Origin: Lepidodermella squamata
Taxonomy: Eukaryota > Animalia > Gastrotricha
Assembly (NCBI GenBank): GCA_047495785.1
Contig: JBLDXI010000024.1
Location: 1,426,001-1,490,000 of the forward strand
Direction: 5' to 3'
Length of the DNA stretch: 64,000 nucleotides
Part shown: positions 3,001 to 38,078 of the stretch, one piece after another
How the letters are laid out: each line of letters begins with the position of its first letter
How positions within the stretch are numbered: position 1 is the first letter of the stretch
Notes under the pieces: generated by a model
What the model saw: only the letters and a program-made list of their open reading frames with translations
Told to the model about the DNA's origin: nothing
Database searches by the model: none
Translations under genes and position numbers: made by a program

Positions 3001-3003
3001 GAC

Positions 3004-3273: not shown

Positions 3274-3437
3274 AATAAATTACGAAGACTTTAAAAACGG
3301 GGAAATTTACCGATAGCCATATTTTTATTTCTGCTGCGAATTTTGAAAATTGATAGATAATGATGAAAGTAGAAATAATGATTTTAGCTTAAAAAAAGAC
3401 GGCACGCGATTAATCTTCCCTCATTCATTAAATCATT

Positions 3438-4217
3438 TTATTGTTGTTTGATATACAGAAAAAAAGGCGCCAATTTAACAAATGCTATTTTTATAAGAGA
3501 TAACGAAAAACAGCCGCTCATAATCATTTTTCCAGTGTGAAACAGTGTGGCAGATACATTTAACTTTGGTTCATTTTCATTAGTGCTGACTTTGGAGAAA
3601 ACACGTATACGCAACCCAGGAAAAAATTCTGGTTGGTAAACGCATATTTTAGGAAATTGAAAAGCTAGCAGGCTAAGATTGACAGTTTTATGTAAATCGT
3701 AGAACAATACTATATTAGTAATTATTGGGTCACGGATTATCAACCGTCGATTAACAATTTTTCTGAGTGTAGCTTGAAGAACTCCAAAAGCAGTAACACA
3801 ATTCGAGGCTGTTTTGGTACCACTACAAATTATAGCTCCGGATGAAAATAATAAAAACGTCGCGTTAAAAGCAGGTACTTTATAGAACAAAGCACTCGAC
3901 ATTTTTTTTGGGTTATATTTTGCACAAGGTAAAATTAGGGCTAGACTATCTAAATTAAATAGAAAATTTGACCTTGATTTAGCCATAATATTTGAAATAG
4001 AGTAATCAATATCATATTGTATATTATTTACTTCCATATTTAATGGTGGGGATTTCAATAGAAAAAAAGGTTCAGTGCTAGATTGTAGCTTTAAATCAAC
4101 AGGATAGGATATAGTCAAATTTATGATCGTGGTCGACTGTGATGCGGCTGATTGAAGGCTTGTAACATACTTGATTTCAGCTGTTTCTGTTTGAACTTTG
4201 CGATAGGTTGAGGGCAA
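3438..4217 (-). CDS. TATA-box binding protein (TBP)-like protein encoded inside the Polinton
   Basis: Two TBP repeats: ISNIMA..NLDSLA....AKYNPKK...TFLLFSSGAIICSGTK and ITNIV..VNLSLLA...YQPEFFPGL...TLFHTGKMIMSG. Intronless. Start uncertain (TTG 4217, an internal ATG, or fusion with the upstream ORF). Confidence 0.9.
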   Translation of the reverse strand: MPSTYRKVQTETAEIKYVTSLQSAASQSTTIINLTISYPVDLKLQSSTEPFFLLKSPPLNMEVNNIQYDIDYSISNIMAKSRSNFLFNLDSLALILPCAKYNPKKMSSALFYKVPAFNATFLLFSSGAIICSGTKTASNCVTAFGVLQATLRKIVNRRLIIRDPIITNIVLFYDLHKTVNLSLLAFQFPKICVYQPEFFPGLRIRVFSKVSTNENEPKLNVSATLFHTGKMIMSGCFSLSLIKIAFVKLAPFFLYIKQQ

Positions 4218-4576
4218 ATCATGACCAAAAAAGAGGCGACAGAATCTTGCTTTCGTGACTCATGATTGGTAATTGGAACAGCTGGTTTATTTTTCGCCTT
4301 GCATGGCGTTTTCGCCGATTTAGCAACTGATTTCTTCTCAGTACCTATGACTTTTTTCTGAATTTTATGTTTAGCATTGCGTTTCGGTTGATTACGAACC
4401 GCAGTTTTTGCTAATCTAGAGGCTGATGTTTGTTCAACAGGTTCCTTGGTAAACGTACTCGTATTCGGTTCATTCAGGTTTATTGGTACGAAATCATTGT
4501 TAGAAAAAAACAATGGAGAAGCCGGAGATGAATTGAAGAAAGCTTCCATAAATTCAGTAAGAAGAATAATATTCAA
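4121..4576 (-). CDS. Lys-rich low-complexity ORF, possibly the N-terminal part of the TBP-like gene
   Basis: 151 aa, basic. Overlaps the TBP ORF, which lies in the -1 frame, across a T6 run at 4227-4232. Confidence 0.5.
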   Translation of the reverse strand: MNIILLTEFMEAFFNSSPASPLFFSNNDFVPINLNEPNTSTFTKEPVEQTSASRLAKTAVRNQPKRNAKHKIQKKVIGTEKKSVAKSAKTPCKAKNKPAVPITNHESRKQDSVASFLVMICPQPIAKFKQKQLKSSMLQAFNQPHHSRPRS

Positions 4577-4717
4577 AGTTCTTGCGTTTGAAATGAAAAA
4601 TGATCGAATGACGGAAGCCGGCCGCGGTGATTGGTTGGAGTTGCTGAGCCCCAGAACCTTCTGATTAGGAATGAATAAATAACAAAGGCATTATATAAAT
4701 AAAATAAACTGACCAAA

Positions 4718-5524
4718 TTAGGTCGAAGAGCTGTTGTTGAAAGGTAAGACGGTAGCGACAGGTTGTAGTGCGATGGAGCGTTGCATGATGCCCGGCCATT
4801 TACTATTCGCACCTTCCTGCTGACCATTAAGAACATCGATGACTGATGCCCATGGAATTTTCTGAGCGTGTTGATAGGGTGGAGGTACGACGTTCTGCAT
4901 TTCTACTGAGACCCTACGACCTGCCCGAAGTAAAAGGTAGAATATGTGCCGCAGGTTTACGCTGACACCATTAAAGTTTTTTAACAAATCGTAAAATAAA
5001 TGTTGGATGTAGATATATCGGCCTTCGGTGTAGGTAGGGTGTGCCGTTAGGCCATACCAGAAACTTTCTTCCAGGCCAGACACAATAATAGGGTTAGGGC
5101 TATCGTCGAGGCAATCATCCAAAAGGTAATCACTTTCAGTAAAAATAATTGAGTGACAAATGGACGACCATAAATCATCCTGGCGAACAAGGAGCGTGGT
5201 AGTATCATTTAGGATGCTCTTCCATAAATCATGCCCAACGATGGAAGCACAGGTAGCTAAATTATATTCGGCAAAATGTTGAAAATTCGTGCCATCGTGG
5301 GTTGATGGGAAGAGACGAGCAACGGCTCTTTTGTAGCCGAGATAAACATGATCGATAGTAATATGTTGGCCTTTCGAGTTGGCAATCAAATCGAATATGG
5401 CGACTTCAGCGAATGTAATGCGTCCAGAGAGGGTATTTAGTGATATATTTAATGATTTCGGAGGAAAAAGTAAATCTTCTCGGTAGAAAATCGCTTCATA
5501 AGATTCATCATAGCCAATAATCAT
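4718..5524 (-). CDS. Polinton hypothetical protein (268 aa)
   Basis: Long ATG-initiated ORF in AT-rich DNA, co-oriented with the other element genes; no motif recognised. Confidence 0.6.
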   Translation of the reverse strand: MIIGYDESYEAIFYREDLLFPPKSLNISLNTLSGRITFAEVAIFDLIANSKGQHITIDHVYLGYKRAVARLFPSTHDGTNFQHFAEYNLATCASIVGHDLWKSILNDTTTLLVRQDDLWSSICHSIIFTESDYLLDDCLDDSPNPIIVSGLEESFWYGLTAHPTYTEGRYIYIQHLFYDLLKNFNGVSVNLRHIFYLLLRAGRRVSVEMQNVVPPPYQHAQKIPWASVIDVLNGQQEGANSKWPGIMQRSIALQPVATVLPFNNSSST

Positions 5525-9629: not shown

Positions 9630-11526
9630 AATTCAGAAGAGTCGACGGCGAAAGCAAACGATTTTAACAACTACTTCGCAGATCTTGGTAGAAAAACCGC
9701 TGAGTCCATCGATACTCCTCAAAATATCGATAGGAATTATTCAACCGATCATCACTTTCATTTTGGCAATATTTCAGTTGCCATCGTCAAAGAATGCCTT
9801 AGCAAGTTACCGCCTCGAAAGCCTACAACAGCATCGGATGGTATTCCCGAATGCGTACTGAAAATAGCGTCTGACTTTCTCGCTCCTCATCTAGCTTTAA
9901 TTTTCAACAAGGTCATTGAAGAAAGGAAAATTCCGGAAATATGGAAAAAGGCGACTGTTACGCCCTTGTACAAAGATGGCTCTAAAGACATAGTAGGAAA
10001 TTATCGGCCGATATCCATTTTATCTCCTGTTTTTCGCACATTCGAACGTTGTCTTTCATTTCAAATTAAGGCTTATCTACGTAAGATTCAGTTCATTTCA
10101 CCCTCTCAGTTCGGTTTTAGGAAAAATCACTCAACCGAGACTTGTCTTGCGAAAATGACAAATGATTGGCGCTGTGCTATTGATAAGGGCTTCACGACGG
10201 TTGTAGTCAGCATTGACATGAGCAAGGCCTTTGATACTCTCAGCATGACCGGTATTTTGTCCTCCTTGCGCAGTGCGGGTTTTGATGAAGCGGCAATCGA
10301 GATTTTAACTAGTTATCTTACGGATCGCAAGCAAATTACCAAAATTAATGGACAATTTTCTCAGACTGCAAGCTTAGAATTCGGAGTACCTCAGGGTTCC
10401 GTCTTGGGCCCTTTATTATTTACGATCTACGTTAATGAACTGCCTCTGACATCACTCAAGTCTACTGTTATTCAATATGCAGACGACACCACCATTTATT
10501 TCTCGGCTAAAAATGTGACTGAAATTGAAAGCGTTCTTCAAAAAGACCTTGACAATCTCGTACTATGGCTAGGTTCTAACTGTCTCAAAGATAACGGCAA
10601 AAAATCCCAGCTAATGATCGTTACACTGAAATCAATTGGCAAAATTAATATTACTATAGGCGGGGTCTCAATTGAACAGACAGATTCGATTTGTTTATTA
10701 GGCTTCACTTTAGACGAAAAACTGCTCTGCAAGGAACACATCGAGAAAGCTTGCTCTAAGGCTCGAAAAGGTATTTATGCGCTTCAATTAGCGGCAAAGA
10801 ATGGCTTGAATAGGGACTGCCTGAAATCAATGGCAAATGGCTTGATTTTTTCGCACTTACAGTACTGCGATATTATTCTAAATGAAGCCTGTCCGACTTC
10901 TCTTCAAAAACTACAATCTTTGCAGGATAAGGCTGTCAGAATTGTCATAAATGCGCCGGATTGTGCCGACCCTTCTCCTCTACGCGACGAGCTTCAGGGC
11001 AAGCGAAACGTGCACATTGCCACCTTAATGTACAGATGTCTTGCTGGTGATGCACCCGATGTTATGAAATCTATTTTTGTTCCTAATCCTCCATCTTCTA
11101 CTCGTTCTTCACGTCTCAGCTTCAAAATTCCTACTATGAGACTTGACTACGGCCAGGCCTCTCTTAGTTACGCAGGGCCTCTCTTGTTTAACAATTTACC
11201 ACTCCACTTTCATTGTCCTCATCATCGCCCAGTTGATATTACTTCCTATACTAGCCTTTCCTCACGATGCGATTGCGGCTTCAAAATCTGTTACAATGCT
11301 CACTCTTGCCGACAACTTGTTTACAATTTTCTGTTGACTAAACCTAAGCTCAAATCATATAGATGCTAAATTTTGTACATCTTTTGTTTTGTTATTATCA
11401 AACTTTGAAACGGATTGAAACATGACTCGAATTTTCTGCCACTTTTATACCACTTGAAACTTTTTGTTATCGTGCTCTCAACTTTGGGATTTATGCACTT
11501 AAATAAAAATAAATAAATAAATAAAT
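9630..11526 (+). mobile_element. 5'-truncated non-LTR retrotransposon (CR1/L2-like LINE), reverse transcriptase
   Basis: Frame open from ~9630 (ANDFNNYF...DGIP...IPEIWKKATVTPLYK) into ORF 9966-11369 with NYRPIS, QFGFR, DMSKAFD, GVPQGSVLGPLLF, YADD. (TAAA)n tail at 11500-11526. No endonuclease domain. Confidence 0.92.
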
Positions 11527-12568
11527 GGTCATTTGAAATAATAAAGGGCAGAACCGTATTAATAGGCAGGGCCTTGTATGACGTGGCTTGCATGAGCGCC
11601 TCCTAAATAACGATGAAAAATGAAAAAGCCATTGAAGGTTAGTCAAATTGGTTGAAATCGCCCTGTTGATGTGAAGTGAACGTTGTTTCGGTGCGCTATT
11701 AGTGAGGAGGGGGTAAGCGAGCAATTTGCTAGGGTAGTATCTGCTAGGGTGGATAGGGAAATATTGACCACTTTTCGCAGAGTCTTATAACGATGATAGA
11801 TAGAGACACTCGCGACAGACGGAAAAACGATTGCAGCAAGGTGGACATTTTTAGCGAACAAAATCAGACGTTTGTATGGAGCCGCCGGGTCTTGGTACGC
11901 ACGTCTCTTAATAATGAGCTATACTTCCGAGAGCATTTTCGTTATTAGATGTTTGCGCTGCTAATAGGCCTTGAATATTGAAAGAAAGCTGGCAAATTAG
12001 CCATCACGAATTTGAGTTGGCATTCTTTAAGTTCCGCCATTTTGAACTTTCTGTAATTTGAAAATCATCTCTCTATCCATTTCTCTATGCGCCGTGATGT
12101 TCATTTAGCACGCAAATTACGAAAAGATTCATCTTTTCTCTGATGCAGGTGGCTGCAGTGATGCCGTAGAAAAACACGCGGCGCTAGCTATACCCCGGCT
12201 TTTGGAGGTGTAAAATGAACAAATCGATACATATAGTATCATATTTTTCAAAAAGGGGCTGAAATCTTGGCAATTATTTGGATGCGGCGTTCAACCTCCC
12301 GGTGATTCTCCTCAGGTATGTGATTAAAAATAAGATCATCACGCATTTGAGTTTACGTTTCGCATTCAAGTTGCCCTGATCGATTATTGCAGCAAACATA
12401 GCACCCATCCGTACTTCTCCGTGGGCAAGGATGTAATGTTCTTCTAGTTCCTGCGCGAAATTATTGGGCACTAGACGGGCGAATATCCGTGAGAATTCCT
12501 GCTAATTACCTATGGTTCGATTCTATATTAACTGACATCAAACCTTGTATTTTCAGTCACTGTCAAAA

Positions 12569-15163
12569 ATGACTTTCTCGAAGGTTTCCATACTTGTAAT
12601 CGCACTCACTAGCTTCGTCAATGGTCAAATTATTAAGAAATACAACATTTCAATGCTGCAGATGTTTCCCATTAATCATATAGGATGCCCGCCAGCTGTG
12701 AAAATCGCAATCGACAATGCCAACAACCGTACTGATGTACTGCCTGACTATAACATCGTACAGGACTATCGCGATGAAGAAGGCTTCGCGGTAGGCTACG
12801 CGCCAGTCCGCGAACTCGTGAGATACGGCCGAGCGTGGGAAAACAGGCCCAATGACGGTCTCGTTCGCTCACCGATTTTTCTCGGACCGTTCATATCCGT
12901 CGGCTGCAAACCCTACGGGAAGCCGCTGAAATATTTCAACATGGTTGGACTTGCTATTGCATGCACAGCGCCTTTTCTCGCTGATCATATGACCTATCCG
13001 AATCTCTACAGTGTTCAGTCAAACGGAGAGCTGAACGCTATATCTCTGGTTCATTTCTTTAAAGACGTTGGAAAGTGGTCGACTATAGGGATCCTAACGA
13101 TCGCCAGCTCTCCAAGCGACTATATATCAGCAACATACGTCAACAGATACGCCTTGGAAAGTGGCATTGAAGTTCCAACTTTTAACATTGTCTTGGACAT
13201 AACCGACGATGCCATCAACACGCTTCTATTTCATGACGTTCGAGTCATTGTTGTCTACATCACCAACGAGACTCTGTTGTGGCGTTTTCTCTGCAAAGCT
13301 TATTTCGCTGGAATCACCGGTGCGCGATATATTTTCTTCATGTCAAACTCTTTGGCAGCGGAACCAAACAACATCAGGCCAGAAAACTTACTGGATAGTT
13401 GGTGCACAAGAGAAATCGTGCGAATACAGTTTAATTTCGCTTTGTTTGTCGGGCCGATAACTCAGGTCATGGATGATAGCAGAGTTAGCGAGTTGGGTTA
13501 CAATACTACGTATTTCGAGGAGAAAATGTTCGAAATTTTGAAGAGACCTCGCTCTGCAACTAAAGGATCGTTGAAATATGTCTGCCATGATGCTACCATG
13601 ATGGGGATATACGCCATGCATGATGCCGACAATCGGCTGAAGCGCGAATTCAACATGTCGCTGAGAGACATGAACACAAATCCCGAAGTCGTAATGAAAG
13701 TCGTGAATCAATCCGTATTGACTGTGAACATCTCTGGCCTGAGAGGTCAACTTTTTTTCAGCAAGCGAGGATACGCCGAAAATGATTTGATTATTTACTC
13801 CTACTATGATCCTGAAGGATATCGCAATAAGTTTTCTTCAGTTGAGGTGGATACAAGCCGTAACTACATGTTCTATGGTCGGTATAAAATTTCTTCTCTC
13901 GAGCCGATGGATTGGGCTGCTTGGAAGAATGGCGGCAAACCCCCCAGAGATTCAGCATTTTTAATTTCCTACATTCAAGACATTTCTTCCGGTATATCAC
14001 TGTCAGTAATAGTGATTGCGAGTATTTCGTCAGCAATCACTCTGCTAATGCTACTATTTACTGTCAAGAACAAAAGAAATCCTGAGTTGGTCATTTCCAG
14101 CAGCCTAAAAATCGTAGGCTTCGGAGGCTGTATTTTGCTTAATGGGGCCGGAATCGCTTATTCATCGAAAACTAGTGTATCTAGTTTCTCCATTGCTATC
14201 ATCCGGCTTAGCCTAGTTGTTGCTTCAATGTCCCTCCTAACGGGAGTGGTGTCTTTCCGGGCATTCTTTCTAGCGCGTAAACTTCCGCCTCCACCGAAAC
14301 GAGTGAAAGTTCATCAGGATGGAAAAACAGTTAACATGATCACTGTTAACAATTCTAATCCACGACTCAGTATTGTTGTACCGACCAGAGGAATAGAAGT
14401 CTCGAATCCCACATCAGGAAGCCCAGTACCACCTAAGGAACACAAATCATTGGCGCGATCCCCTTCTAACACCTCGCACATTAAATTGGTTGCATCAACT
14501 TCAAATCAGCCCTTAATAGCTCCGACTGGCGAAAGGAAACTATCCACCACAAATTTAGGAACACATCTGCCAGTCACTCGAACAACGTCAAATCAAAGCC
14601 AGCAATTTTCTGCTAACATGCAAATGACCCACCGCCACACCGTTATGCTAACAGAATTCGAAGACGGAATCCAAAAAAATACACTAGTTTCTACAGTTGG
14701 TTTCATGGTCATCAATGGTTTTCTGCTTGCGGTTTGGCTACTTTTCGATTCATTCAGTTGTCAAACAATCACCGCCCCTCGTGCCAAAAATTATGACCCA
14801 AATAATGACACAAACTACGACATCTCTGTCGTGACTTGCTCATCGGCCAATGGAATCTTCTGGATGATGGCTCTCGCGCTTTTACACGTTGTAGTCCTAG
14901 CTTTTTGCACATTCCTAGGCTACAGGGTCAAACAACGCTTGAAACTGCTTCACGGTCATTGCTGCCGTGAAATGGGTGGAATATTACTCGGCCCGCTGAA
15001 TGCACTCTCGCTGCTGCTCTGCTCGATTATGATCGTCTTCATTTTAAAAGATGAAATTCGCCAACACACTGCCGTCGCATTCGCGGCTTTGCTTATTTCA
15101 CTGACGACGAGCGTCAGCCTAGGATACTCAACACTGAAGGTCGCGTTCGAAAGGCGCGGCTGA
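12569..15163 (+). CDS. Class C GPCR, GABA-B-receptor-like (Venus flytrap + 7TM), single coding exon
   Basis: Signal peptide MTFSKVSILVIALTSFVNG; PPAVKIAIDNANNRTDVLPDYNI; LADHMTYPNLY; HDA; ISGLRGQLFF; WKNGGKPPRD directly before TM1 with no Cys-rich domain, as in GABA-B; seven hydrophobic segments. Confidence 0.88.
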   Translation: MTFSKVSILVIALTSFVNGQIIKKYNISMLQMFPINHIGCPPAVKIAIDNANNRTDVLPDYNIVQDYRDEEGFAVGYAPVRELVRYGRAWENRPNDGLVRSPIFLGPFISVGCKPYGKPLKYFNMVGLAIACTAPFLADHMTYPNLYSVQSNGELNAISLVHFFKDVGKWSTIGILTIASSPSDYISATYVNRYALESGIEVPTFNIVLDITDDAINTLLFHDVRVIVVYITNETLLWRFLCKAYFAGITGARYIFFMSNSLAAEPNNIRPENLLDSWCTREIVRIQFNFALFVGPITQVMDDSRVSELGYNTTYFEEKMFEILKRPRSATKGSLKYVCHDATMMGIYAMHDADNRLKREFNMSLRDMNTNPEVVMKVVNQSVLTVNISGLRGQLFFSKRGYAENDLIIYSYYDPEGYRNKFSSVEVDTSRNYMFYGRYKISSLEPMDWAAWKNGGKPPRDSAFLISYIQDISSGISLSVIVIASISSAITLLMLLFTVKNKRNPELVISSSLKIVGFGGCILLNGAGIAYSSKTSVSSFSIAIIRLSLVVASMSLLTGVVSFRAFFLARKLPPPPKRVKVHQDGKTVNMITVNNSNPRLSIVVPTRGIEVSNPTSGSPVPPKEHKSLARSPSNTSHIKLVASTSNQPLIAPTGERKLSTTNLGTHLPVTRTTSNQSQQFSANMQMTHRHTVMLTEFEDGIQKNTLVSTVGFMVINGFLLAVWLLFDSFSCQTITAPRAKNYDPNNDTNYDISVVTCSSANGIFWMMALALLHVVVLAFCTFLGYRVKQRLKLLHGHCCREMGGILLGPLNALSLLLCSIMIVFILKDEIRQHTAVAFAALLISLTTSVSLGYSTLKVAFERRG

Positions 15164-16595
15164 GACGCCCCTGATTAGCTGAAATACTAGCTTCGCATTG
15201 AGAGTTATTTTCGAAGCTGTCTCTAAGTTATAGCTTCATTATAAAGACGGCTTGCTTTTCGAAGACGTAATGTGATATGTGATGTTGCGTGCATGTTAGT
15301 AATCGAATAAAATTTTAGCTGGCATGCACAAGTTCGTGGAATAACCCTAGAAAGTCGGGCGTATAAGCTGCCTAACCAAGAATGACACAGGCAATTTGTA
15401 CTAGTGATACCTTCTATTTACAGCTGACAACATGCAACATGCAATCATTTCGATGTCTTATATTCAAGTTTAACATAAGACCTGGACCTTACCGCGTGTC
15501 GCCAAAAAAGAACAAAATGCGCAGTTTCTTTGCCGACCAGATGAAAAATACTATAAATCCTGACGTGCATTTCACCGAAATAAAATGGCCGTGTTCAACT
15601 TGAATGATCAATTGTTTACGGTTTAGGCCATCGCATTCCTTGATGATATTGGAAACAAAGAACGAGGGCCGGTTAGTAGGTAAAGTCCACCCCAGGTGTA
15701 AAAGAGTTCAATAATAATTTTAATAATCAAGAAATGATATATGCCCTAGAAAAAATCCGGGCGTGGCAAAATGCTAAGGTATTGGGTACGCAATTTTGAA
15801 AAATTAGTACTATTTCACGTTAAAACTTGACACCGGTCACATGACTGAAAACTCATCAAAGTCATGAGCCTTCGATTTCTGTGACAAAAAATGATTAAAT
15901 GATTGAAAAATGAATGGTAGACTGGGATGTACAGCTAATTTTTTTCGAATTTCAAAATAAAAAATTAATTGATGTTAAGGTCAAATGACTCCGAAAAACT
16001 CAGAATTCAATGAAAAACCTGCGATTTTTACAATTCTGTTTTTTCTCTTTTTGACCCCCTGACTTCCTAATTTTTTCTCGAATATATATATAATTCTTCT
16101 GGTGGATACGCTCCTTTTGATCTAAAAATAAATTAGGAACTCGAGTCTGCTGTGCCCCTAATATGTAATCGCTCAAAGTGTTTGTAAATGCACTTTTTAT
16201 GGCATTTATGCGTTTTCGGTCACTTATGACGAATTTTGTCACTTTATCCAAGAAGTAGTCTGACCAAACTGCCGACCATATATTTGTACGCAGCATATCC
16301 CGGGCTGTCTAGCGATATTATTTTATTCAATTTTTCTCTGCAGGCCAACATTAGGCTATAACCAACCGTCGTTCTTTATTGCGTCAGATTTTTTCGATTT
16401 TTTTATATAGATAGATTAATAAAAAATAGCATCGACCGACTTGCATTTCTTGCAGTTTTTCCTAGTTTTTCGATCAGCATTGCATCCCTGGGAAGCACCG
16501 ACGGCGATGTTACCTGTCAATCTTATAGGCTAGCCAGCTTGCACAACATAAATCAGAATTATACGGGATTTCAAGCTGGATTTTTCTTAAATATT

Positions 16596-18535
16596 ATGAC
16601 AAAGAAATGTTGCGCTGTACTTTCCATCGTAGCAATAAGCTGGTTGATCATCATACATTTAGCTCTCGATCTATCCTATACATCTTCAATTTACATTAAA
16701 GTTACATCGATAACAGTCAACGTAAGTGGATCGGCAGTGAAAAGCGATGAACTATATCTTCCGCCGTCTGATTTGGCTGACGTGTTTGCAGTAAGGCGGA
16801 AATTAGCTAAGGAAGGCTGCTATAAGGGCTATGGCCACTTTTTCGGGCTCAATGTTAGCGAGTACAATCGAACACCGGTTGTAAGCAATAACAAACAACT
16901 AGCGCCGACAATTGTCGGCCGCCAAGCTCTTGATACCATCCTAATAGCCGAAAAATTCAAGATTCTATTCTGCCCAATAGCTAAAGTTGGCTCGTCAAGT
17001 TGGAAGCGATTTCTTTTCTTCATATCCGGCTGCTATCCAAACGCGACTCGACCGGATGAAATTCCACAGGAGTGGGTTCACGAGTATTTCTTCACCCATG
17101 CTAATCCTTACTGTGGGATCAAGCGATTGAAGGATATTGAACAGTCGAAGCGAGGCGAAATTTTTAGGACTTACAAAAAGGCGGTGTTTGTTCGAGAGCC
17201 ATTAATGCGAATCACTTCAGCTTGGCACTCGAAACTTGCTCCAAAGGTCAGAAATCAGTACTATGCAGAGGTAAGATTCAGATAAAACCTAGCTTTCGTC
17301 ATGGTCTGTATTTCTCATATAAGGATGTTGGATCGAGAATAATCAAGAGATATCGCGTGAATGCGACTCGAGCCGAAGTTAGCGTGGGATATCCTGTTAA
17401 GCTGGAGGAATTCGTCCAGTTTTTGCTTCGGGAAACTCACCCATTTTTGGCTGCTGATCCCCATTGTGAGTTCCAACAAAGAAATCATATTTAAGCCGAA
17501 ACTTTGAATAAGTTGATGGTCACTTTCTGCTTCCCATGAATTATAAGAAAATTTGAGTTTTCAGTCTCGAAAATTGAATTTCAGTATTCCAGCTTTATAT
17601 TTGAGGTTCAAGCGCTAGATTTCTCCAGAATAATTTTTATTATGCCGGACAATGCGAAGAACAAACCGAACGTATTACGTCATCGAAGGATCTATTTAAA
17701 AATCAGTGATTTTCTCGAGATAAGTTCAATGGTACCAATAAGTTGAATAAAATTCCCTGGTCATCGATGATATCAATTTCGAGGAAAATTGCACAAATTC
17801 GGAAAATTTTTATTACAGTTTAGGGGTACGCAATTTTATTATTATACAGCGTGTCCCAAACTTTACGCACCTATTATGTAATTTGGCAACCTTATTGTAG
17901 GAAATTCAACTAAATTAAACCTACCGAACAAAAAAATCTAATTTTTATCCTCGATTCAACCGAAGAAATAAAAAATTTATCGGAATTTATCGGAAAACCC
18001 GGGGGAAACCTCAATGATAACTGGTTCGGTAATTTTCGGTATTTTACCCGGCTGGACCACATTTCTTCGGACTCTTTTAGTGCTATTAACAACATACATG
18101 ATTACTATTCTTGTGATTTTTTGAATTTTTCTAAATTTTTTCCGGGCATGAAAAACTCATTTTAGAGTTTCTAAACCCTTTTCCGTGTATTTTCTTTGCT
18201 TGCGTTAATTTTGGGACACGCCGTACATATTACACATTAATACCTTTTTTATTATAGGGTTACCCTACCACATGGCGTGCGCACCGTGCACCTTGGACTA
18301 CGACTACATCGGGCATTTCGAAAACATGCCGGAAGAAGCTCGATACATAAGCTATAACCTTTTCGGCTACGACGCCGCAAAGGCCTACTTTCAAACTCAC
18401 GGAAACCTCCGGTCTAAATTCGATCGCCACCTTAACGATGAGCTGGAAAAACTCCCAGAGTCGGACAGAACTTCGCTGATAGAACATATTTCTCTCGACT
18501 ACGACATATTTGGTTATTCAAAACCTTCGCCGTAA
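16596..18535 (+). CDS. Carbohydrate sulfotransferase (Sulfotransfer_2); copy 2
   Basis: Exons 16596-17270, 17324-17465, 18258-18535. Motifs LFCPIAKVGSSSWKR, FVREPLMRITSAW, DPHWLP..MACAPCTLDYDYIGHFE, DYDIFGY. Confidence 0.9.
17847..18223. mobile_element. Tc1/mariner-type MITE, family A, copy 1
   Basis: TA|CAGCGTGTCCCAAA...TTTGGGACACGCCG|TA; internal sequence shared with copies at 28345, 45937 and 55924. Confidence 0.85.
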
Positions 18536-21504: not shown

Positions 21505-22017
21505 TATCGAAATCGCGACAACTCCGCATAGAAAACTCCGCAAAATCAATTAAAAATTAATTATTTATTTATTTTGTCAACGACAACTCCGCAAACGTCT
21601 AGTTTATTCGAATTTAAATTTTTTATTCAATTATTTGAAATAATTTTCATCCGTCAACTCCGCAAATGATCATTTCAGACAACGACAAGCCCGCAAATTA
21701 TTTATTTCTGCTTATTTAATTATTCTTTCGACTCCGCTTACAGCGATTCATAGTAAGGGTAAGATGGTGGTCAGGTTAGGTTACGATCGGAAATGGTTCG
21801 TTTTCGATAATTAAATAAATTATTTTGCGGAGTTTTCGTTATCTGAAACGATCATTTGCGGAGTTGACGTAATAAAAATTATTTCAATTAATTGAATAAA
21901 AATATTGAATTCGATTGAATTTGACTTTTGCGGAGTTGTCGTTGCCGAAATTATTAATTAATTAATTAATTTTAAATTCATTTTGCGGTGCTGTCCGTGC
22001 GGAGTTGTCGCTATCTG
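21505..22017. mobile_element. Foldback/MITE-like element with ~200-bp inverted arms
   Basis: Left arm with repeated (CGAC)AACTCCGCA motifs (~21515-21710) mirrored by TGCGGAGTTG(TCG) motifs and shared AT-rich spacers (~21810-22012). Confidence 0.75.
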
Positions 22018-22332
22018 TATTGACGCTGCGGTTTAGTCGTAGAACCGGCAAATAATTAACATAAATAATTATTAATTTGCCACAAAATTCATTTATTTAG
22101 TCCGTCATCACGTGATTTTTCCGTCGTATTCCGGCACGTGACGCAGAGATTTTTGTTAAGGAGGATTCAAGCCCCGGCGTCCTAGTACGTCTCATGAATT
22201 CAGCTACACTCACTCAGGTTTACGCAGCGGTCACCGTTTAACTCATAATTAAATTAAGCCGTTAATCCGCTCATTTATAGATTTTTCTCGAAATGACCTT
22301 ATAAATGACCTTATAAATTTTGGTTGGTCACA

Positions 22333-24632
22333 ATGGCAAAATCTGCACCCGACAATGCAGCTGAGCTGCCAGCTCAATTTGAATCGATTTCAATTGGAAA
22401 TTATGCGATCAAGGTCCCTACCCGAAAGACGCCCACCTTGAAAAAAGCCTATATGGCTGAGCAGCCCGACAAGGATGTTCTAGGATCGTTAGAAGAGGTG
22501 ATAAATTCCGCATTTTTATATAAATCTACCGGCAATTAATTCCTACTTCCAGTACAAGAAACTGAAGGGTAAACTTGTTCCGAACATGGTTCGAATAATG
22601 GATATCGTGCCGATTGGCGCAGCTTCATGTGTTGTCGTACAATGCTTCAATGCCGGTAGGTTATTTTTGAGAATTGCATCCATCTCGGAATTATTGAAAT
22701 TTTTTGTTAGATAATATGCGAAAGGTTATCAGCCAAAGAAATGGCCAGCCTTTCGAAGAAGACCAAATAAAGCTTTGGCTTGTTCAGCTTGCAATGGCCC
22801 TCGATTTTCTTCATGGCTGCGATATTGTTCACCGCGAAATTAAGGCAGATGTAGGTTTCTGCGACTAAAAATAGTGAACAAGTTTTACCTTAAATACTCC
22901 GCAGAACGTTTGTCTGGTGCAATCAGTTTCGACTGACATGATAAAGCTGGGAGACATTGGCTTGGTCAAACGTAAACAGTGAGTTTTTATCCCTAATTAG
23001 AACCTCGTTATTGGCAAATTTCTCTTCGTAGGCTGAAGTCGCTGCATGAGCTGGACCGCGAGGAGGCCGTGTATATTCCCAGAGAATTATGGGAAGAAGG
23101 AGCAAAGTTCACAAGACAAACCGACATCTATGCTCTCGGTGTTCTTATATACGAAATAGCGTTTCTGAAGGTGCCTGCCATTGAATTCCCGGCAAACATG
23201 TCCCTACCTGAGGCAAGTGCTCGGTAAGTTATATACCTGCTATCATAGAAAATAATTATATGTATTATGTGGTGTTCCAGTTGGGATTCCCTCATGATTG
23301 AACACCCAAATGCGAGGTTCTCGAAGGAATTTGAAGAACTGTGTTACAGCCTTGTGGCATACGACCCTAAAATACGACCCGCGGCTTCTGAAATTCTGAA
23401 AGATCCTAATTTGAACGACGCTCACGAGTTTGCGAAGAAGCTTCATGGCGAGGAAGAGAGAATCTTCGAATCGGCACCTGTTAGTTCGATAACTTTGCCT
23501 AATCCTGGTAGAATATCAAGAAGGAACAGCACAGCCAGCATGGGTTCTGGCTACTACAGTTCTGGCTACTCAAGTGGCTACTCAACGCCCTCTGTAAGTC
23601 GACCCAGCTCTCAGCAGAGGCCTGGTTCGGAAGAATCCAACTATCAGAAGGAAGCGTTACCACTGAATGCTAATTCATCGCTGATGCCAGCTGTTTCGAA
23701 TGCTGGCGCCTCTGCCGTAAGTGAATCTAGCATCTAGCCAAACTTCAGTTTAAATAACGATTAAACTTCTTAATCCAATAGTAAATATTTGTTTATTTAG
23801 AGCTCGAATAACCCGGGCCTTTCGGAGGAGAAAAGGATAGAAATACAAAATCAATTGATTCTTATACTGCACGCGCAAAAATGTGCGAAATGCCACGATT
23901 ACGCAAAATCGTTCGCCGAACTTGTTGAAACATCATCAGCCTCCTGCGACGGCAGCAACAACTGCCAGGAGGCCAATTGTGAGCGAATGAAAGACGTCCT
24001 CCAACACCTAGAATGGTGCAAAAACGACAAGGATTGCAAATGTAATTTTAGAAAAGCTCTAAAAAAGTTCTTGAATTTCAAATTATAGATGAGTGTTGTT
24101 TATCGACCCGTCAGATAATTCTGCACTGGCAGAATTGCAAAGACGCCGAATGTCCGGTTTGTAAGGAAATTCGGATACGTTCTACTCCCTCTAAGGCGCT
24201 GTTCGATTTCGGCAATCCGTTGGATCTTCCTATAGTCCGCTCATGGCAGAGGATTTTTTCAACGCAACAACGAAAAATGGTTATTGACAAATGTGTTGCC
24301 GTCTTGATCGACTGGCGAAAAAAACAAGTTTCACTTGAGGACCCAGTGGACCCACTGGCTAGGACCCAGGAAAATCTCACTCTGAGCGCCCCATCAGTGG
24401 TTCAAGACGACCCCAGCGAAAGAGATCGTGTTGTCTGTTTTACAGTGCAAGCAGAGGCGGAAATTTTCAGCAATGCTCCAAGTCTCGAGCGATACTATTT
24501 TTTATTGACCGAAAAATTGTCTGCCGCCATAGGTTTGTGAATTCTTTGATTGAGCTGATTTTCCTGAATTTTTTACAAACCTCGATAGCTGAATGTTTTC
24601 CAAATGTGCAAGGAGAGCAGTGTTCGATTTAA
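22333..24632 (+). CDS. Kinase-like (probable pseudokinase) domain fused to CBP/p300-type TAZ1 and KIX domains; multi-exon
   Basis: Spliced translation: YAIK, FEEDQIKLWLVQLAMALDFLHGCDIVHREIKADN, IKLGDIG, TDIYALGVLIYE, DPKIRPAASEIL. Then SEEKRIEIQNQLILILHAQKC..C..MKDVLQHLEWC..RQIILHWQNC...CPVC (TAZ1) and RSWQ...QRKMVIDKCV...EAEIFSNAPSLERYYFLLTEK (KIX). The junction 23716/23801 is in frame. Confidence 0.85.
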
Positions 24633-24657
24633 CATGTCAAGATCATACGGCTTGCTC

Positions 24658-24690
24658 CTTGGGACTAATAGAGAGACTATTAGTCCCAAG
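24658..24690. mobile_element. 33-bp minimal TIR element with 8-bp TSD
   Basis: GCTTGCTC|CTTGGGACTAATAG-AGAGA-CTATTAGTCCCAAG|GCTTGCTC. Confidence 0.8.
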
Positions 24691-26320
24691 GCTTGCTCAC
24701 CGCCTAAAATGCAGACACGGTTTGGTTTCATAGTTTGAATTCAGATAATATTTTATGTATCATACTTTTTATAGTATTCCACATGGAGTGCATACATAAA
24801 TGGTTAAAGGAGGACCCGAAATTTCCGATATGTCACACCGGCTACGAATAAGCGGTGGGACTACTGCAGCTGTGGAACTGACTGCTGTTGGGGCCCAAGT
24901 CCGAAACGTGCCCATACGCAACGTTTAGATTAAATTGATAAAATTCAACAAATCCCGCACGAGGCAAGCGCATGTGTCAACCCGAGCACAAAGAACGATG
25001 GTAACAGGCGCGGATACCGAAATTCACATTATGGCCAGATTCAGGATGCCCACACAAAGAAGTCCGGCGTCCCGGGTGCGTCCCGAGTTGAGCCTTCAAC
25101 AAAAGCACTGGTTCCCATCGTTCTCAGCCGTGCTCGGGCCAATACCTCCGCTGGCCCGTCTGCAGTGAATCAAGATATGTTTACATTAGTTAAATTTGCT
25201 GGAAACGTCGCATACACGGGCACGTTTTAGAGCGTCTCGAGCGCGGAGGGGATAAGTGCCGTTATCCGACCGCATAAGGGCCGGTCCCAACGCGAACGGG
25301 CCTAAATCTGGCTTGGGCTCCAACATGACCTCGTTTTACGCCCGGTTATTTCATCCTGATTTATGAATTCAATTATTCTAGAACTTATACGGCGCTAAGG
25401 ACTAATGACTGATTTTGCGAGAAAATTATTAGCTTCACGATGAGAGAATGAATTGCAGAATGAATTAATTTTACTAATTTTAGGCAGTCTCTTTCTTTGT
25501 CTTGTTCGCCATAGAATATTCACATATTTTCATATTTTCCAAATTTTTCTATTGCTTTGATTTTGATGCTGATCCCGATCAGTCTACTTTTACTTGTATG
25601 CTATTTCGATTTTTCAATTTTGTTGTTGTCTTAACACTTCCTTTGATCACTTGTCTGAGCTGTCCTCTTCTGGGCGTTATGGCTCTTTAAATAAATTGAA
25701 ACTTTTAGAGTGAACACGCTTTCTTTGTTCTTTGGCGAGGATTTGAAGTGCGAAAGATTTGTGATTCGCCTATGTTTGTGCCCGAATCAAGGACTAAAAT
25801 GTGTGTACTGAGGACGCGCATTTCGCATTCCAGCACATTTTGGCGCCTATAATGTTCGCTGGTTGTGGCTGATGTTAAAAATGGCTTATGTTCATCCTTA
25901 AACAATAAAACTTCTGTTTTGCTTTTTTTAACGATTCAGTTTAATATCCCCGATTTTTGCGACATTGCCTATTTCTCCTATAAGAGGCTACACTATTACC
26001 CCAACTGCTGGTCAGACGAAGGTAAATGCGTCAATTTCACACTTTCCCGAGGAAACAAGGCGTGATTTTAAGATAGGGATGATCAGGCATCGAACGTGAT
26101 CCCCAGTAATGCTGGCAACGAAACATTAAACTCCATGGTATCACGGAAATACCAGGAAAACACCTTCAAATTTATTTGTCTGAATTTGTCTGATTTGTCT
26201 TTCAAATTTATTTGTCCAACAACAACAGAGAGATGATCGGATGAAACTCCACTCATTATTGCCGAGAAAAATGCGGAGGCGGATGATTCATTGCCATATG
26301 TTCAGCTCTTAGGCTTTTTC

Positions 26321-27217: not shown

Positions 27218-28303
27218 ATGCGGTTGTTATTCAGGAATCGCATTTTGACAGCTGCTTCCCTAATATTTAGCCTGATTATTGTCTCCGAATTATTCCCAGT
27301 ATTTATTCGATATTTATTAAGCCGATCGAACAATATCGAAGTTCGATTCGCAAAACGGCGAAAAGCAGCCTACGATCAATGCGTGGCCGATAATCACACT
27401 GATTTTAAGCATCTGGGTTTGAGCAAGGTGATGCAGGATGGATGGCATTCATTCAAGTTCATGTTCGTCGATGACACCAATAAAATCATCCTATGCAAGT
27501 ATGTGTTCAGTTTTTTTACAATTTTCACCCCATAAAGTCTCTATTTCAAGCGTTCCAAAAGTCGCGTCAACTAATTGGAAGAAATTACTGCTCATAGCTT
27601 CAGGCTCGCCCGAGGCCAATTTCACGTCACCCAGTGAAATTCCCGATGATGTCGTCAACCGCGATGCGATTGAGCTCAAAAATTGGTCGAATTTCAAGCC
27701 ACTTTTCGTCTACTCGGAAAATGAGGTCATTTCGCGCCTCCGAAATTATACCAAAATTATTTGGGTTCGAAATGTGAGTTATATTCAATATTCAAGATGA
27801 ACTTTTTATTATTAATGAATTTCCAGCCTTATAACCGTTTAGTTTCTGCCTGGCGATCCAAGTTTTCCAATGCAAATCGCTACTACAGCAAATTTGGCCG
27901 GTCGATTATTGAAAAATACCGAAAAAATGCAACGGCAGCTGACCTAAGCCGGGGTTACCCGATAAGTTTCGAGGAATTTCTCAGTTACATCCGTGACGAA
28001 AATTCTGCCGGTCATCGGCTTGATGTTCACTGGAATGTCATGTCGGATTTGTGCCGTTTTTGTCAGATTCCGTACGACTACATCGGGCATTACGAGTCGT
28101 TGGAGGAAGAAGCAAGTTATTTATTGGCGAAACTCGTGAAACGACGTGGTGGTGAGAAATTACCGGCATTTCCTGCTAAAGATCCCCGACGGAACAAAAT
28201 TGGCTACGACGACCCTTCATTATCTGTCTCGGTCTCTCTGTTAAATGAAACGCTTTCAATTTTCGACGCTGATTTCAAAATATTTGGTTATAAAAAACCA
28301 TGA
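27218..28303 (+). CDS. Carbohydrate sulfotransferase (Sulfotransfer_2); copy 3
   Basis: Three exons: TM anchor and FVDDTNKIILC; VPKVASTNWKK and IIWVRN; PYNRLVSAW, DVHW, CRFCQIPYDYIGHYE, DFKIFGY. Confidence 0.9.
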
Positions 28304-33324: not shown

Positions 33325-36300
33325 TTTATCGTAATTAAAAGGTGTTAATAGAGCTTATCTGAAGGGTTAAAAAGCCTTATCTGTATATTAAGTGAACTTG
33401 TGGGAAGAACTATTAAGGCTCACAGGTGATAATTTTAAGGTGTAATTTGAGACATGAGTATATTGATGACTAAGACGACATGAAAACTGACGTTTACTGA
33501 AATGACAATTGAAAGCTCTTATTTTTGCCAAAGCCATCATTTCTTCCGGGTCTAGAAAAATCAGGAAAAACTTGATTTTTTTTGAAATTTTCAGAACATA
33601 AGGAGGGGCCTATATCAGATAGCTGTGAAAATGTCTGGGATTTTTTGCATTTTACCCTGATTTTATAAAAATATTTGAAGGTATGGGTAAATTTGGACAC
33701 CAGAATGTTAATTTAAACACCTCATTAGCATATGCACAATTTTATTGAAACGCGCACATCTGTATTTTTTCATAAAATTATTTCGCTTTAATTAATAACT
33801 TTCGGCTCGCCTGTACCGAATTCTAGCGGAATAAAGTTATATTTTTCAACCCGCCGACAGTTCAAGGCGGTATTAGCTTGGGATAATAATTTCATTCCAC
33901 CTTTCTTGCGGATTGTCTAAGGCGGACCTCTCTTCTCTCTTCAATTTTTCTTGATTGTCCAAATTGATTGCGTCCAATTTTAACCAGCGTTGCGGTATTC
34001 GTCGATACACGTCAATGATTCATCGCATTTAAAATTGCCCCGAACTTTCGACCGGACAAAAGTTCATTTTTAAGAAAAACAAGTGATAAGGCATTTAAGA
34101 AACTTTTTTAATGCTATTTTGCCCTCTTTCTATAATGGACTAGGTGTTTGACATGTATACAATGTGTATAAACTCGTGAAAACATGAAAAAATTCACGTG
34201 TAAAACTTTAATCATTGCTGAAATGATGCAAGATAACGGACTAGAAACAACGGCTATAAAAAGCCGAGGGCACAGGTACCGGCAGGCGTAGAAAAAAATC
34301 AAGCCAATACTGCAGTTCACTTCAAGTTTCCTAGCTAAAATTCTACACAAATTTCTGCTAACACAAGAAAAATGGCAGCAGGTATGCTTATACTCCAAGG
34401 AAATTCACCCTTTTTGCAACTTTTCTTGATTTTCAGGCGCAAATTTACAACAGGACGGCGATGAAAAGCAGGCTAAAGATGCTGATGAGAAAAGCGTCGT
34501 TGTTCAAATTCCAGAAAAAGAGCAAATTGAGGAGGTGGCTGAGTCGAAAACTGCATCCGTAGAGCCGCCGCCCATCGGATTTTTCCAAGTCGTACGTTAT
34601 TCGCCACTATATCATTACTTTTTCATTAATTTTTTCTAAAATAGTTTCGATACGCCTCTGCACTTGACATTGTCCTGTTGATTTTTGGAACCCTCGGAGC
34701 CATGGCTCATGGGTGCGTTAACCCACTGATGGTCTATGTGCTTGGCTTAGTTATCGATGATTTCGTAAATCCAGGAGTGAGTCTTGAGTGCTGAACCCCT
34801 GAAAACATACTATAATGCTCGGTTTTTCAGCGTCTTTGTAATACAACGGAAGTTCCGATCTCGTCTAATCTAACTGTGGGTGAGCAGGATGCAGCAACAA
34901 TGGCTGAGATGCGAACTGCCCAGGCTAGAATCACTCAACTTTCTATTTATTTTGCAAGTAAGCTCGAAATCGTCTTAAAATAAACCGAGATGTCTAACTT
35001 CGATCTTATGCAGTCATTGGGGCAGTATCTTTCACTGTTTCCTTCGTGCAATCCTACTTCTGGAATGTATCCTCCGAAAACCAAATGCTTCGGATTCGGA
35101 AGCTGTACTTCAGATCTCTTCTACGGCAAGACATCTCGTGGTACGATAAACAGGACGCAGGAGCTTTAACAACCCGTTTTGCTGACGACGCCGGGCAAAT
35201 TCAAAATGGCATTGGCGATAAACTTGGCAGTTTCATCCAAAATCTCAGCTGTGTTATTGGCTGTGTCGTAATTGGACTGGTCATAGGTTGGCAACTCTGC
35301 TTAGTCACAATCACTATGCTACCGGTTAGCTGCTTCTTGACCTATCTGATGTTTAAGGTGGCGTTCTCCCGGTACACTGCTGAAGCTAATGCTTATGCTA
35401 AAGCTGGATCAGTCGCGCAAGAAGTTCTTCAAAGCATTCGAACTGTCACAGCTTTTGGTCGGCAGAGGGAAGAGATCGACCGATACACGGCACATTTAGA
35501 GGATGCCAAAGTAGTTTCGTCCAGGAGTGGGTTTTACCAGGGCCTGATCACCGGTGTGACTTACTTCTTCCTGATCGCTATGTACACCCTTGGTTTCGGT
35601 TATGGGGCGTACTTGATCAGCCAGCCCGGGTCTGGTTATACTATCGGCAAATGTCTAACGATAGTCTTCGCCCTTCTCAATGGAACTTTCTGCTTCGGAA
35701 CTTCGTTTGGATCAATTCAAGCCTTTGCTGCCACAAGATCGGCTGCGAGCCGGATATTCGCCACAATTGAACAAATGCCGACGATAGACGTGTACGCCGA
35801 AACAGGGCTGAAATGCGAGAAAACTTCATTCAAAGGAAGAATCGAATTCAAAGACGTGTCATTTCACTACCCAGCCAGGGCTGATGTTCCTATTCTGAAG
35901 AGGGTCGCTTTAACCGTGGAGCCTGGAACTACTGTAGCTCTAGTTGGATCTAGTGGCTGCGGGAAATCTACGATTATCCAGTTGATTCAAAGACTTTATG
36001 ATGCTGTCGAAGGATCGGTTGAATACGACGGACGGAACATCAAGGACTACAACATAACTTCCCTTCGATCGATGATAGGCATAGTTAGCCAAGAGCCGGT
36101 ACTTTTCAATACGACAATTGCTGAAAACATCCGATACGGTCTATCAGACGGATTAGTCTCACAATTTGATATTGAGCAAGCTGCCAAACTTGCGAATGCC
36201 CATGACTTCATTTCGAAACTACCGAAAGGATACGAGACTCTTGTTGGAGAGCAAGGTGCGCAGTTGAGTGGTGGTCAGAAGCAACGAATCGCTATAGCTA

Positions 36301-38078
36301 GGGCTTTAGTCCGAGATCCAAAGGTCCTTCTTCTCGACGAGGCAACTTCTGCGTTAGACACTGAGTCGGAGGCTATTGTTCAAGACGCGCTGGACAGAGC
36401 CCGAGAGGGTAGGACGACTATCGCCATAGCCCATCGCCTTTCTACAATCATCAATGCTGATAAGATCATCGTTATGAATGCTGGAGAAGTTTTCGAAGTA
36501 GGAACTCACAATGAATTGTTGTCGAAGCAAGGAATCTACGCGAAATTGGTCGCCGCGCAACATAGCAGTGCCATCGGCGAGAAAAATGCAATGAGTGCTC
36601 AGGAGCATCGCAACGCGTTGGTCAGGGCGAGAACATCAGCCCGAGAACTGGAAGCACTAGCAAAATCCGCTGAACCTGAAACGGCGGCTGCCAAGAACGA
36701 GGATGAAGACAAAACTGACAAGGAAAAGCTGGTGAAGAAACACTTTTCGATCTTACGGCTATGGAAAATGGCGTCGAATGAAGCTTTTTTCTTCCTTATG
36801 GGCTCCTTTGGTTCAATCATTTGCGGAATCATTTGGCCGTTGTATGCGATCATTTGGTCAAGGATTTTAACAGCTTACGAGATTTGCGACCCTAACGAAG
36901 CCTTCAATCGAGCTTTGATGTTCTCCCTTCCCTAGTAATAAAATTGGGTAACATGATCATGCAAGAAATGTATATGATCTGGAACAGAATCCATAATATC
37001 TCGTGAAGAAATTATGTGATCTCGTCGCAGGTTATTACGATCGCGCGGGATCTTGTGCCCCCAGATGTACCATCGTGCAACTTCTTGTGCAAACCTGTGC
37101 ACGATCTTGAAAGTTCTTGCATGTTCTCGCAACTTCCCGCAAGTTCATTGGAGATCTTGTGTAGAACCTGCAAGTCTTAGTAATTCTTGCACTTTTCTTG
37201 CATTCCGGTTGCTCTGGATACTCAGCCCCATATGTCCCATATTTGTCCCACCTACAATCCACAATTAACACTCAAATTGATTCACTTTTCGTAATTTTTT
37301 ATTCGAGTCCATCAAATAGGCAATAAAATTGATTGAACGAATCAGGAAAAAGAAATAAATTGCCGCAAAAGTTCGGCCAAATGTTCAACGAGAACATATT
37401 AGCGAGAGATTGTCGTAGCACAGGTCGATTACCACACCATTCCTTGTGGAGTGTTCGATTTATCTTGGCCCGAGTTGGCGTGATGACGTCCGCGGCTTTT
37501 TGATCCAAGTTGAAGTTGCACCCATTCTTCATAAAAACTGAAAAATATCAGATCGAGGAAAAGAATCGGCAATGAATAAGAATAATAACTTACTCATCCA
37601 CAAAGGACGCCTTCTCAGGTCCAGGAAATGATGATCGGTGACAGCAGGTCAGAACAATCAGACAGGCTCTTTGCGATTCCTCACTTTGCACCAGGGCTAA
37701 AGTACACCCGAACAGGCCACCGCTGCAACTCACCAACTTGTTGAATAACACGGAGAACTGCAAAACAGGGCAATTATTATTTTCAATTATGAGCGAAATT
37801 CAACTCACCAATTGGCTAGAGAAGCAAATTCCATGGAAAACAGGAAAAATAAATAAATAATACCTAAAACCTAGATAAAGGAAACGATCAAGATATGCGG
37901 AAATTTCTCTGCTCAGGTTGAATAAATTCAGGTAATTTCAGATTGAATGAAAGCGTCAACAAAAAAAACATAAATAAAACTCAAATTTGAATCAATGAAA
38001 AATTATCAGCAGAGTCAGAGTCAGCACAATCAGTAATGCGCGTCATCGTTTCGGCTCTCTGGCTATCCGTAACGGGGC

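Follow-up and report, generated by a model that had tools for sequence, protein, structure and literature searches.

The gene described here lies on the plus strand at positions 22333-24632 of a 64,000-nt stretch of DNA (the window; contig JBLDXI010000024.1, positions 1,426,001 to 1,490,000) from the gastrotrich Lepidodermella squamata; the window has about 40% G+C and a eukaryotic organization with short GT..AG introns. A preliminary description of this DNA proposed that one spliced frame leads from a kinase-like fold through a Ser/Gly/Tyr-rich linker into TAZ1 and KIX, and both the phase-consistent exons and a transcript contig from sequencing run X1 bear this out. Behind these domains lie the remains of a RING-H2 domain, and the gene is almost certainly a RING-dead member of a family with the architecture (pseudo)kinase-TAZ1-KIX-RING-H2. 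Exon borders were located by script, and the Pfam, database and fold searches were made exon by exon. The features of the locus are as follows.

22333-22497, plus strand: exon 1, with the start codon and a degenerate kinase N-lobe; 80% identity to the corresponding exon of the closest paralogue, L036
22553-22655, plus strand: exon 2, kinase-like core (the block of exons 2-5 spans 22553-23223)
22711-22850, plus strand: exon 3, kinase-like core, Pkinase profile positions 88-126
22905-22978, plus strand: exon 4, kinase-like core
23032-23223, plus strand: exon 5, kinase-like core, Pkinase profile positions 163-196
23281-23716, plus strand: exon 6, last part of the kinase C-lobe (to ~23407) followed by the Ser/Gly/Tyr-rich linker; Pkinase profile positions 229-261
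23801-24041, plus strand: exon 7, TAZ1 up to helix 3, including the first two zinc sites; zf-TAZ 27.2 bits
24089-24532, plus strand: exon 8, last TAZ1 helix (to ~24177) and KIX (~24238-24531)
24307-24393, plus strand: KIX insertion of 29 codons in the helix1-helix2 loop, from the alignment with paralogues
24589-24719, plus strand: exon 9, remnant of RING-H2 exon 1; the model ends at TAA 24630-24632
24658-24698, plus strand: putative transposon footprint, a 41-nt insertion in the RING exon
24775-24851, plus strand: remnant of RING-H2 exon 2, out of frame relative to the main open reading frame (ORF)
24852-25581, plus strand: rest of the long 3' untranslated region (3'UTR), carried by the X1 transcript contig

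The nine-exon model is consistent in phase and comprises 1839 nt, or 612 codons. All of its introns are GT..AG and measure 47-84 nt, the splice sites are intact, and the 612-codon ORF contains no stop or frameshift 5' of the RING region. RNA support comes from assembled contigs of the single run X1, whose RNA label is a guess and whose contigs do not allow expression levels or transcript ends to be read; a second run, X2, is a DNA run. One 2618-nt X1 contig matches the window with 0 mismatches and lacks eight GT..AG introns, i.e., those between exons 2 and 3 through exons 8 and 9 as well as the downstream intron 24720-24774. The joints 24532→24589 and 24719→24775 are both present, and the transcript continues past the stop codon and over the downstream intron to ~25581. 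A processed retrocopy was considered as the origin of this intron-less contig. However, none of its splice joints occurs in X2 (0 found), and the junction of exons 6 and 7 was not found in the 121-Mb assembly at up to three mismatches (≤3), so that the contig is derived from cDNA and a retrocopy is ruled out.

The intron between 23716 and 23801 deserves separate mention, since read-through of this intron meets a stop at 23735-23737, and the preliminary description had named transcripts ending at the stop at 23737 as the outcome that would speak against a fusion. The locus might then consist of two neighbouring genes wrongly joined, a kinase-like gene ending at that stop and a separate TAZ-KIX gene. 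The description called for a check across 23716/23801. In the X1 contig, which is identical to the window and spans exons 2-9, 23716 is joined directly to 23801 (the shorter side of the joint is 241 nt), and the kinase-like and TAZ-KIX parts are therefore on one transcript. The order kinase then TAZ also recurs in five diverged paralogues. Two separate genes are thus extremely improbable, and we take that model as ruled out by the contig. Two further features of the transcript were observed. The last 30 nt of the contig fold back on 25664-25693 of the minus strand, 83 nt downstream of 25581, which is probably an assembly artefact, or else an overlap with a convergent transcript. A peak in X2 depth (~1900) at 25084-25217 corresponds to a repeat within the 3'UTR.

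An exon-by-exon search of the genome for paralogues returned nine further TAZ1-KIX loci, each of which continues into two short exons encoding an intact RING-H2 (…QCPICYLDIVKLGCSSRRLICGH / xYHMxCINRWLRExDxCPTCR…). Kinase exons lie 5' on the same strand in at least five of these nine loci (L036 at C2:2158674-2161750, a second at C2:2334295-2335921, and others on C16, C7 and C11); at the other four (L041-L044), none was found in the flanks examined. L036 shares exon order, intron positions and the kinase motif HRE with the window gene, at identities from 51% (exon 6, where the linker carries indels) to 94% (exon 2), and it is itself expressed and spliced from exon 1 to exon 2 in X1. The paralogues keep an open C3H2C3 RING-H2 (CPICY…CGH.YH..C…CPTC), unlike the window copy with its stop codon, 41-nt footprint and lost Cys. 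Further differences of the window copy are its KIX insertion and deletion and DIG in place of DFG. Another paralogue, L040 (G000:C11:442500-451000, 3500-5442), has a split TAZ exon, with residues 1-25 at 3500-3574 and residues 22-79 at 5272-5442; the spacing of ~1.7 kb suggests an insertion or a partial duplication. The catalytic loop of L040 reads HMD.

In alignments of both DNA and protein to L036 and L037, exon 9 and the segment 24775-24851 prove to be the counterparts of the two RING-H2 exons that all nine paralogues possess. The stop of the earlier model is therefore a lesion rather than the ancestral end of the gene, and since the broken RING is homologous to the intact ones exon for exon, the RING-less state is secondary. 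Three lesions can be distinguished. First, the TAA at 24630-24632 falls at the second zinc-binding Cys, where the window reads EQCSI-stop and L036 reads EQCPIC. Second, the 41-nt insertion at 24658-24698 shifts the frame between zinc ligands 2 and 3; RING exon 1 measures 131 nt in the window copy, whereas its counterparts in L036 and L037 measure 102 nt and 96 nt, respectively. Third, ligand 7 has changed from Cys to Phe, and the CPxC pair reads FPIC in the remnant of RING exon 2 (…CRH V FHMECIHKWL…FPICH…). Eight C3H2C3 ligands in one open frame, which define a RING-H2, are present in the paralogues but not in the window copy.

The insertion consists of a 31-nt palindrome (24659-24689), made of two inverted-repeat ends, together with a direct repeat, GGCTTGCTC, at 24649-24657 and 24690-24698, which forms an 8-9-bp target-site duplication around the palindrome. 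Genome-wide, 36 occurrences of the 15-nt arm were counted, compared with 7 for the reversed control, and its copies pair up in inverted orientation at spacings of 17 nt, 1.2 kb and 3.9-4.5 kb. From this arrangement, we interpret the insertion as a footprint left behind by the excision of a DNA transposon, target-site duplication included. The palindrome (27 nt as searched) was also considered as a dispersed repeat in its own right; this was rejected, as the whole is unique in the genome and only the 15-nt arms recur, as transposon ends. The corresponding DNA-transposon family has the terminal inverted repeat TTGGGACTAATAGAG and candidate elements of 1.2 kb and 3.9-4.5 kb.

G000:C1:3288691-3289939: candidate transposon element
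C1:3381249-3382497: candidate transposon element
C24:1516059-1520617: candidate transposon element
C50:312694-316610: candidate transposon element
C20:218321-218352: short end-to-end pair resembling an excision footprint
C12:830302-830334: short end-to-end pair resembling an excision footprint
C42:4621594-4621627: short end-to-end pair resembling an excision footprint

The TAZ1 domain is well preserved. In exon 7 alone, zf-TAZ (PF02135) scores 27.2 bits against a cut-off of 25, and a further 16.7 bits come from the last helix, in exon 8. The zinc ligands of exon 7 (H24, C28, C55, C60, H69, C73 and C79) are invariant among the paralogues, CBP and the metagenome relatives described below, and those of exon 8 (C3, H12, C16, C21 and C24) are invariant as well, so that 12 of 12 ligands of the three HCCC sites are kept. 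The domain is a TAZ1 and not a TAZ2: the family profile matches the CBP/p300 TAZ1 (CH1) structures 1L8C, 1U2N, 1R8U and 1L3E, and KIX follows directly.

The KIX domain presents a more complicated picture. In Pfam (PF02172/PF16987), exon 8 of the window copy alone gives only a sub-threshold KIX_2 match of 13.1 bits, whereas the family profile matches the CBP KIX structure 1KDX (residues 4-73, E 3.4e-6). An AlphaFold2 model of exon 8 has a mean confidence score (pLDDT) of 65, with 77-83 in the helices, and its eight best Foldseek matches in the PDB are all CBP/p300 KIX domains (probability 0.82-1.0, template-modelling score on the target 0.65-0.74), although with weak E-values of 0.1-2.3. Judged from the profile match and this predicted model, the three-helix KIX fold is retained in the window copy. 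The insertion between KIX helices claimed in the preliminary description is found as 29 residues at 24307-24393; it occurs neither in the 8 aligned paralogues nor in the CBP of this genome, is retained in the X1 contig, and in the model lies between helices 58-82 and 108-128 as a disordered stretch with pLDDT values under 50 and without secondary structure. In helix 3, where the paralogues read KLYTASKELL, the window copy reads KLSAAI, with eight codons (24 nt) deleted. The equivalent of CBP Tyr658, which is Tyr in the paralogues and in CBP, is Ser here, and the equivalent of Lys662 is deleted. In the structure 1KDX, CBP Tyr658 and Lys662 contact the phospho-Ser133 of KID. The KIX surface of the window copy is drifting, and it can probably no longer bind ligands of the phospho-KID type.

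These observations bear on the proposal of the preliminary description that the protein is a chimeric decoy or scaffold drawing transcription factors away from CBP. The architecture and the single transcript on which that proposal was built hold up. In contrast, a RING-less origin does not, given the broken RING-H2 at the end of the gene, and the part of the claim that concerned phospho-CREB and c-Myb is weakened by the erosion of KIX (the insertion, the 8-codon deletion and the lost Tyr658/Lys662). In its strict form, this explanation would see a purpose-built decoy that was never catalytic and titrates activation domains of the HIF/CITED2 and CREB/Myb types from CBP. A single transcript with TAZ1 and KIX arranged as in CBP, at a locus with no histone acetyltransferase (HAT) domain or bromodomain, is what such a decoy would be expected to look like; however, the terminal RING-H2 is homologous to nine intact paralogous RINGs and the KIX has lost the residues that contact phospho-Ser133 in CBP, and we consider a purpose-built decoy quite improbable. 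If the protein does act as a decoy, it would do so as a ligase-dead derivative, and its sister ligases would be its competitors no less than CBP.

The kinase-like domain is degenerate in the window copy. Three colinear pieces match Pkinase (PF00069), with 26.9 bits in exon 3 and 16.0 and 10.9 bits in the others, each below the 31.7-bit cut-off in searches of single exons. The features reported earlier, i.e., HRE for HRD (IVHREIKAD), DIG for DFG (KLGDIGL), PRE for APE (YIPREL) and the want of a Gly-rich loop, are all visible in the translation. At the position of the loop, the sequence is IGNYAIKV in the window copy and IGSYAFKV in its sister L036, with one glycine each in place of GxGxxG, and the HRD/DFG/APE set of an active kinase is not found in the window copy. 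A candidate β3 lysine is present in exon 1 (LKKAY). Within the family, the paralogues L037-L039 retain HRD, DFG and APE, L036 has HRE with DFG, and the window copy has HRE with DIG. The earlier label "NEK-like" is reasonable but not proven: among solved structures, the C-lobe of the paralogue L038 is nearest to NEK2 (43.6 bits, E 2.6e-10), but the lead over PLK1 (38.9 bits, 8e-9) is narrow and STK24 follows at 38.1 bits, PLK and STE20 kinases thus scoring nearly as high. Exon 5 of the window gene by itself matches mixed kinase families at E 0.08 or worse and is uninformative on subfamily. Compared with NEK kinases, the window gene has no NEK-type C-terminal regions and is fused to TAZ1-KIX; like many pseudokinases, it has neither the catalytic Asp nor the Gly-rich loop.

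The relationship to CBP/p300 (KAT3) is evident from the order TAZ1 then KIX, the HCCC sites and an intron near TAZ profile position 50-52. The CBP orthologue of this genome, L045 (G000:C2:2722000-2731999), has TAZ, KIX, bromodomain, CBP-RING, PHD, HAT_KAT11, ZZ and TAZ2 domains, and its TAZ-KIX exons are 36-39% identical to those of the window gene. Unlike L045, the window gene has a kinase-like domain in front and a RING-H2 remnant behind, and it has no bromodomain, CBP-type RING, PHD, HAT_KAT11 or ZZ. Exon-wise Pfam searches of the locus found neither bromodomain nor HAT, as the preliminary description had stated, and no ZZ or TAZ2 domain, the set that characterizes a KAT3 protein. With a normal CBP elsewhere in the genome and these domains absent at the locus, the window gene is therefore not a CBP.

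To look for this architecture elsewhere, the family TAZ-KIX profile was compared exhaustively by HMMER with 1.84 billion representative proteins, in libraries that appear to hold no records from this genome itself. There were 297 matches (best 105.7 bits), and among the best 150 of them no kinase domain was found by motif or by phmmer. Full-text literature searches found no paper describing a kinase+TAZ1+KIX architecture, and KIXBASE mentions kinase domains only with KIX of the MED15 type (PMC5668377). The earlier remark that no described protein with this architecture was known to its author is thus upheld in the full-text searches and among the best 150 of the 297 matches.

Several other proteins share part of this architecture. 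Three clusters among the best 150 matches are TAZ-KIX-RING-H2 proteins of about 305-314 aa from metagenome contigs. The metagenome proteins of this kind (P0008, P0017, P0052, P0162; ENA CAOS20-1_SAMN13674978; about 305-320 aa) share the domain order, the motif CxSTRQII.HWQ.C and ~30% identity with the copies in this genome. These genes are single-exon, carry no kinase and have an intact RING; L041-L044 are likewise kinase-less. A word search with a metagenome TAZ-KIX-RING protein returned only three relatives. L046 and L047 are intron-less TAZ-KIX-RING-H2 genes on 6-13-kb scaffolds of the same metagenome and the only non-self ones found; their source is probably an unsampled animal, and one of the two adjoins a PAN/fibrinogen-C gene. 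In the fish Myripristis murdjan, two proteins annotated as "p300-like" (XP_029933398.1/XP_029933400.1; P0001/P0005) combine zf-TAZ with 3-4 KIX domains and a C-terminal SOCS box. These vertebrate proteins differ in having a SOCS box (a Cullin-5 adaptor) for RING-H2, tandem KIX and no kinase, and are an independent instance in which docking domains of the CBP type have been coupled to a ligase-recruiting module. The plant BTB-TAZ (BT) proteins also place a TAZ domain in a ubiquitin-ligase adaptor, in that case through BTB and Cullin-3 and without KIX, kinase or RING.

Whether the window copy is still in use was approached through its divergence from L036. Ratios of nonsynonymous to synonymous divergence (dN/dS) were calculated by the Nei-Gojobori method and summed per exon for the window gene against L036; synonymous divergence to the more distant paralogues is saturated (proportion of synonymous differences, pS, above 0.75), and the selection figures are thus pairwise against L036 or counts of sites polarised by an outgroup.

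Kinase exons 1-5: dN/dS 0.145, dS 0.69
Exon 6: dN/dS 0.32, dS 1.21
TAZ-KIX exons 7-8: dN/dS 0.35, dS 0.51

The introns of the two genes are 71-90% identical, and the duplication is therefore old. Exon 1 and intron 1 are nearer to L036 (22333-22552: dS 0.21, intron 90%) than the rest (dS 0.5-1.4, introns 71-83%), and this closeness at the 5' end may reflect gene conversion. For the site counts, changes were polarised with four more distant copies as outgroup, at sites where the outgroup agrees. Where L036 equals the outgroup, the window copy has changed at 0 of 37 kinase sites and at 18 of 108 TAZ-KIX sites (Fisher p=0.007). This contrast is not expected under uniform neutral decay; selection has therefore continued to act on the kinase part during the period in which TAZ-KIX was changing. 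In the RING remnant, dN is higher than in any other part (0.29), yet the proportion of nonsynonymous differences (pN) is lower than pS, and the remnant was therefore constrained during part of the time since duplication. On balance, these patterns incline us, with some reserve, to the reading that the gene still serves as a ligase-dead protein, retained because of its kinase-like domain and TAZ1.

Several observations weigh against that reading, and most of them would fit a transcribed pseudogene whose function went with the RING, whose expression is residual and whose upstream frame has not yet been hit. The catalytic part is gone through three lesions (the nonsense codon, the frameshifting footprint and the Cys-to-Phe change), a loss that usually means loss of function. 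In the KIX, 87 nt have been inserted and 24 nt deleted, and the contact residues equivalent to Tyr658/Lys662 are gone. At conserved TAZ-KIX sites, the window copy has 18 private replacements against 6 in L036 (p=0.02), i.e., it evolves ~3x faster. The stop lies 87 nt 5' of an exon junction, with ~0.9 kb of 3'UTR behind it, a layout prone to nonsense-mediated decay. The X1 contig begins at 22533, 20 nt inside intron 1, and exon 1 has no identical contig, its region being matched only by a ~92%-identical X1 contig that was traced to the sister gene L036 on C2; the mRNA might thus start in exon 1, or in intron 1, which would give a product shorter than 612 residues. High-copy repeats lie ~70-200 nt 5' of the gene (X2 word depth ~450-570 at 21600-22135 and ~2330 at 22136-22269, against ~65 in the gene), and homology to L036 begins only at 22265. 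Finally, the death of the RING may be recent, in which case the intact ORF could simply reflect too little time for more lesions. However, a pseudogene does not readily account for the contrast between 0/37 kinase and 18/108 TAZ-KIX changes, the kinase dN/dS of 0.145, the 1839 nt free of stops and frameshifts, the splice sites that are all intact and used, or the full set of TAZ1 zinc ligands. We regard the pseudogene as a serious possibility, though not the one that we favour.

Apart from the gene itself, the window holds ordinary host genes and a reverse transcriptase, and two Sulfotransfer_2 gene pieces lie on either side of the window gene. A neighbouring Maverick/Polinton element at 1-4217 was considered as a carrier of the gene; given these ordinary flanking ORFs, this reading is not supported. 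Upstream, the segment 21800-22040 contains many copies of a TTTTGCGGAGTT(G/T)xCGT motif. The neighbours are as follows.

9966-11369: reverse transcriptase (retroelement)
12545-15163: ANF_receptor-type ligand-binding exon
16539-17285 and 27761-28303: Sulfotransfer_2, two pieces
35046-36935: ABC half-transporter (ABC_membrane + ABC_tran)

Returning to the reading of a ligase-dead protein still in use, a mechanism can be proposed. Complete members of this lineage-specific family, with a NEK-like (pseudo)kinase, a Ser-rich linker, TAZ1, KIX and RING-H2, are predicted RING ubiquitin ligases, in which a duplicated N-terminal CBP module would be the likely means of substrate docking. In the window copy, the RING has been destroyed by the nonsense codon, the excision footprint and the loss of a late Cys, so that the predicted product ends after KIX at 612 residues (fewer if it starts in intron 1) and should be unable to recruit an E2. 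We infer that the protein is still produced, and that it owes its retention to the kinase-like domain and the zinc-intact TAZ1. Such a ligase-dead protein would bind the partners of the sister ligases, and perhaps the TAZ1 ligands of CBP, without ubiquitinating them; from sequence, we infer a role as scaffold or competitor of the sister ligases. A more specific version, in which the paralogue was selected as an antagonist of the sister kinase-TAZ1-KIX-RING ligases and shields activation-domain or kinase-domain partners from ubiquitination, is conceivable, though we think it unlikely.

The locus also carries a warning for annotation, since a stop that looks like a neat gene end is in fact a lesion, visible only by comparison with paralogues. 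As to the biology of the family, TAZ1 and KIX are the surfaces by which CBP/p300 reads the activation domains of transcription factors, and copies of them wired to a RING and a kinase-like domain would aim ubiquitination at activation domains. The window copy offers a natural experiment in this respect, with the ligase removed while the gene is still transcribed and its kinase-like part constrained. If the antagonist version were true, the family would be a tunable system, in which ubiquitin ligases choose transcription factors by their activation domains.

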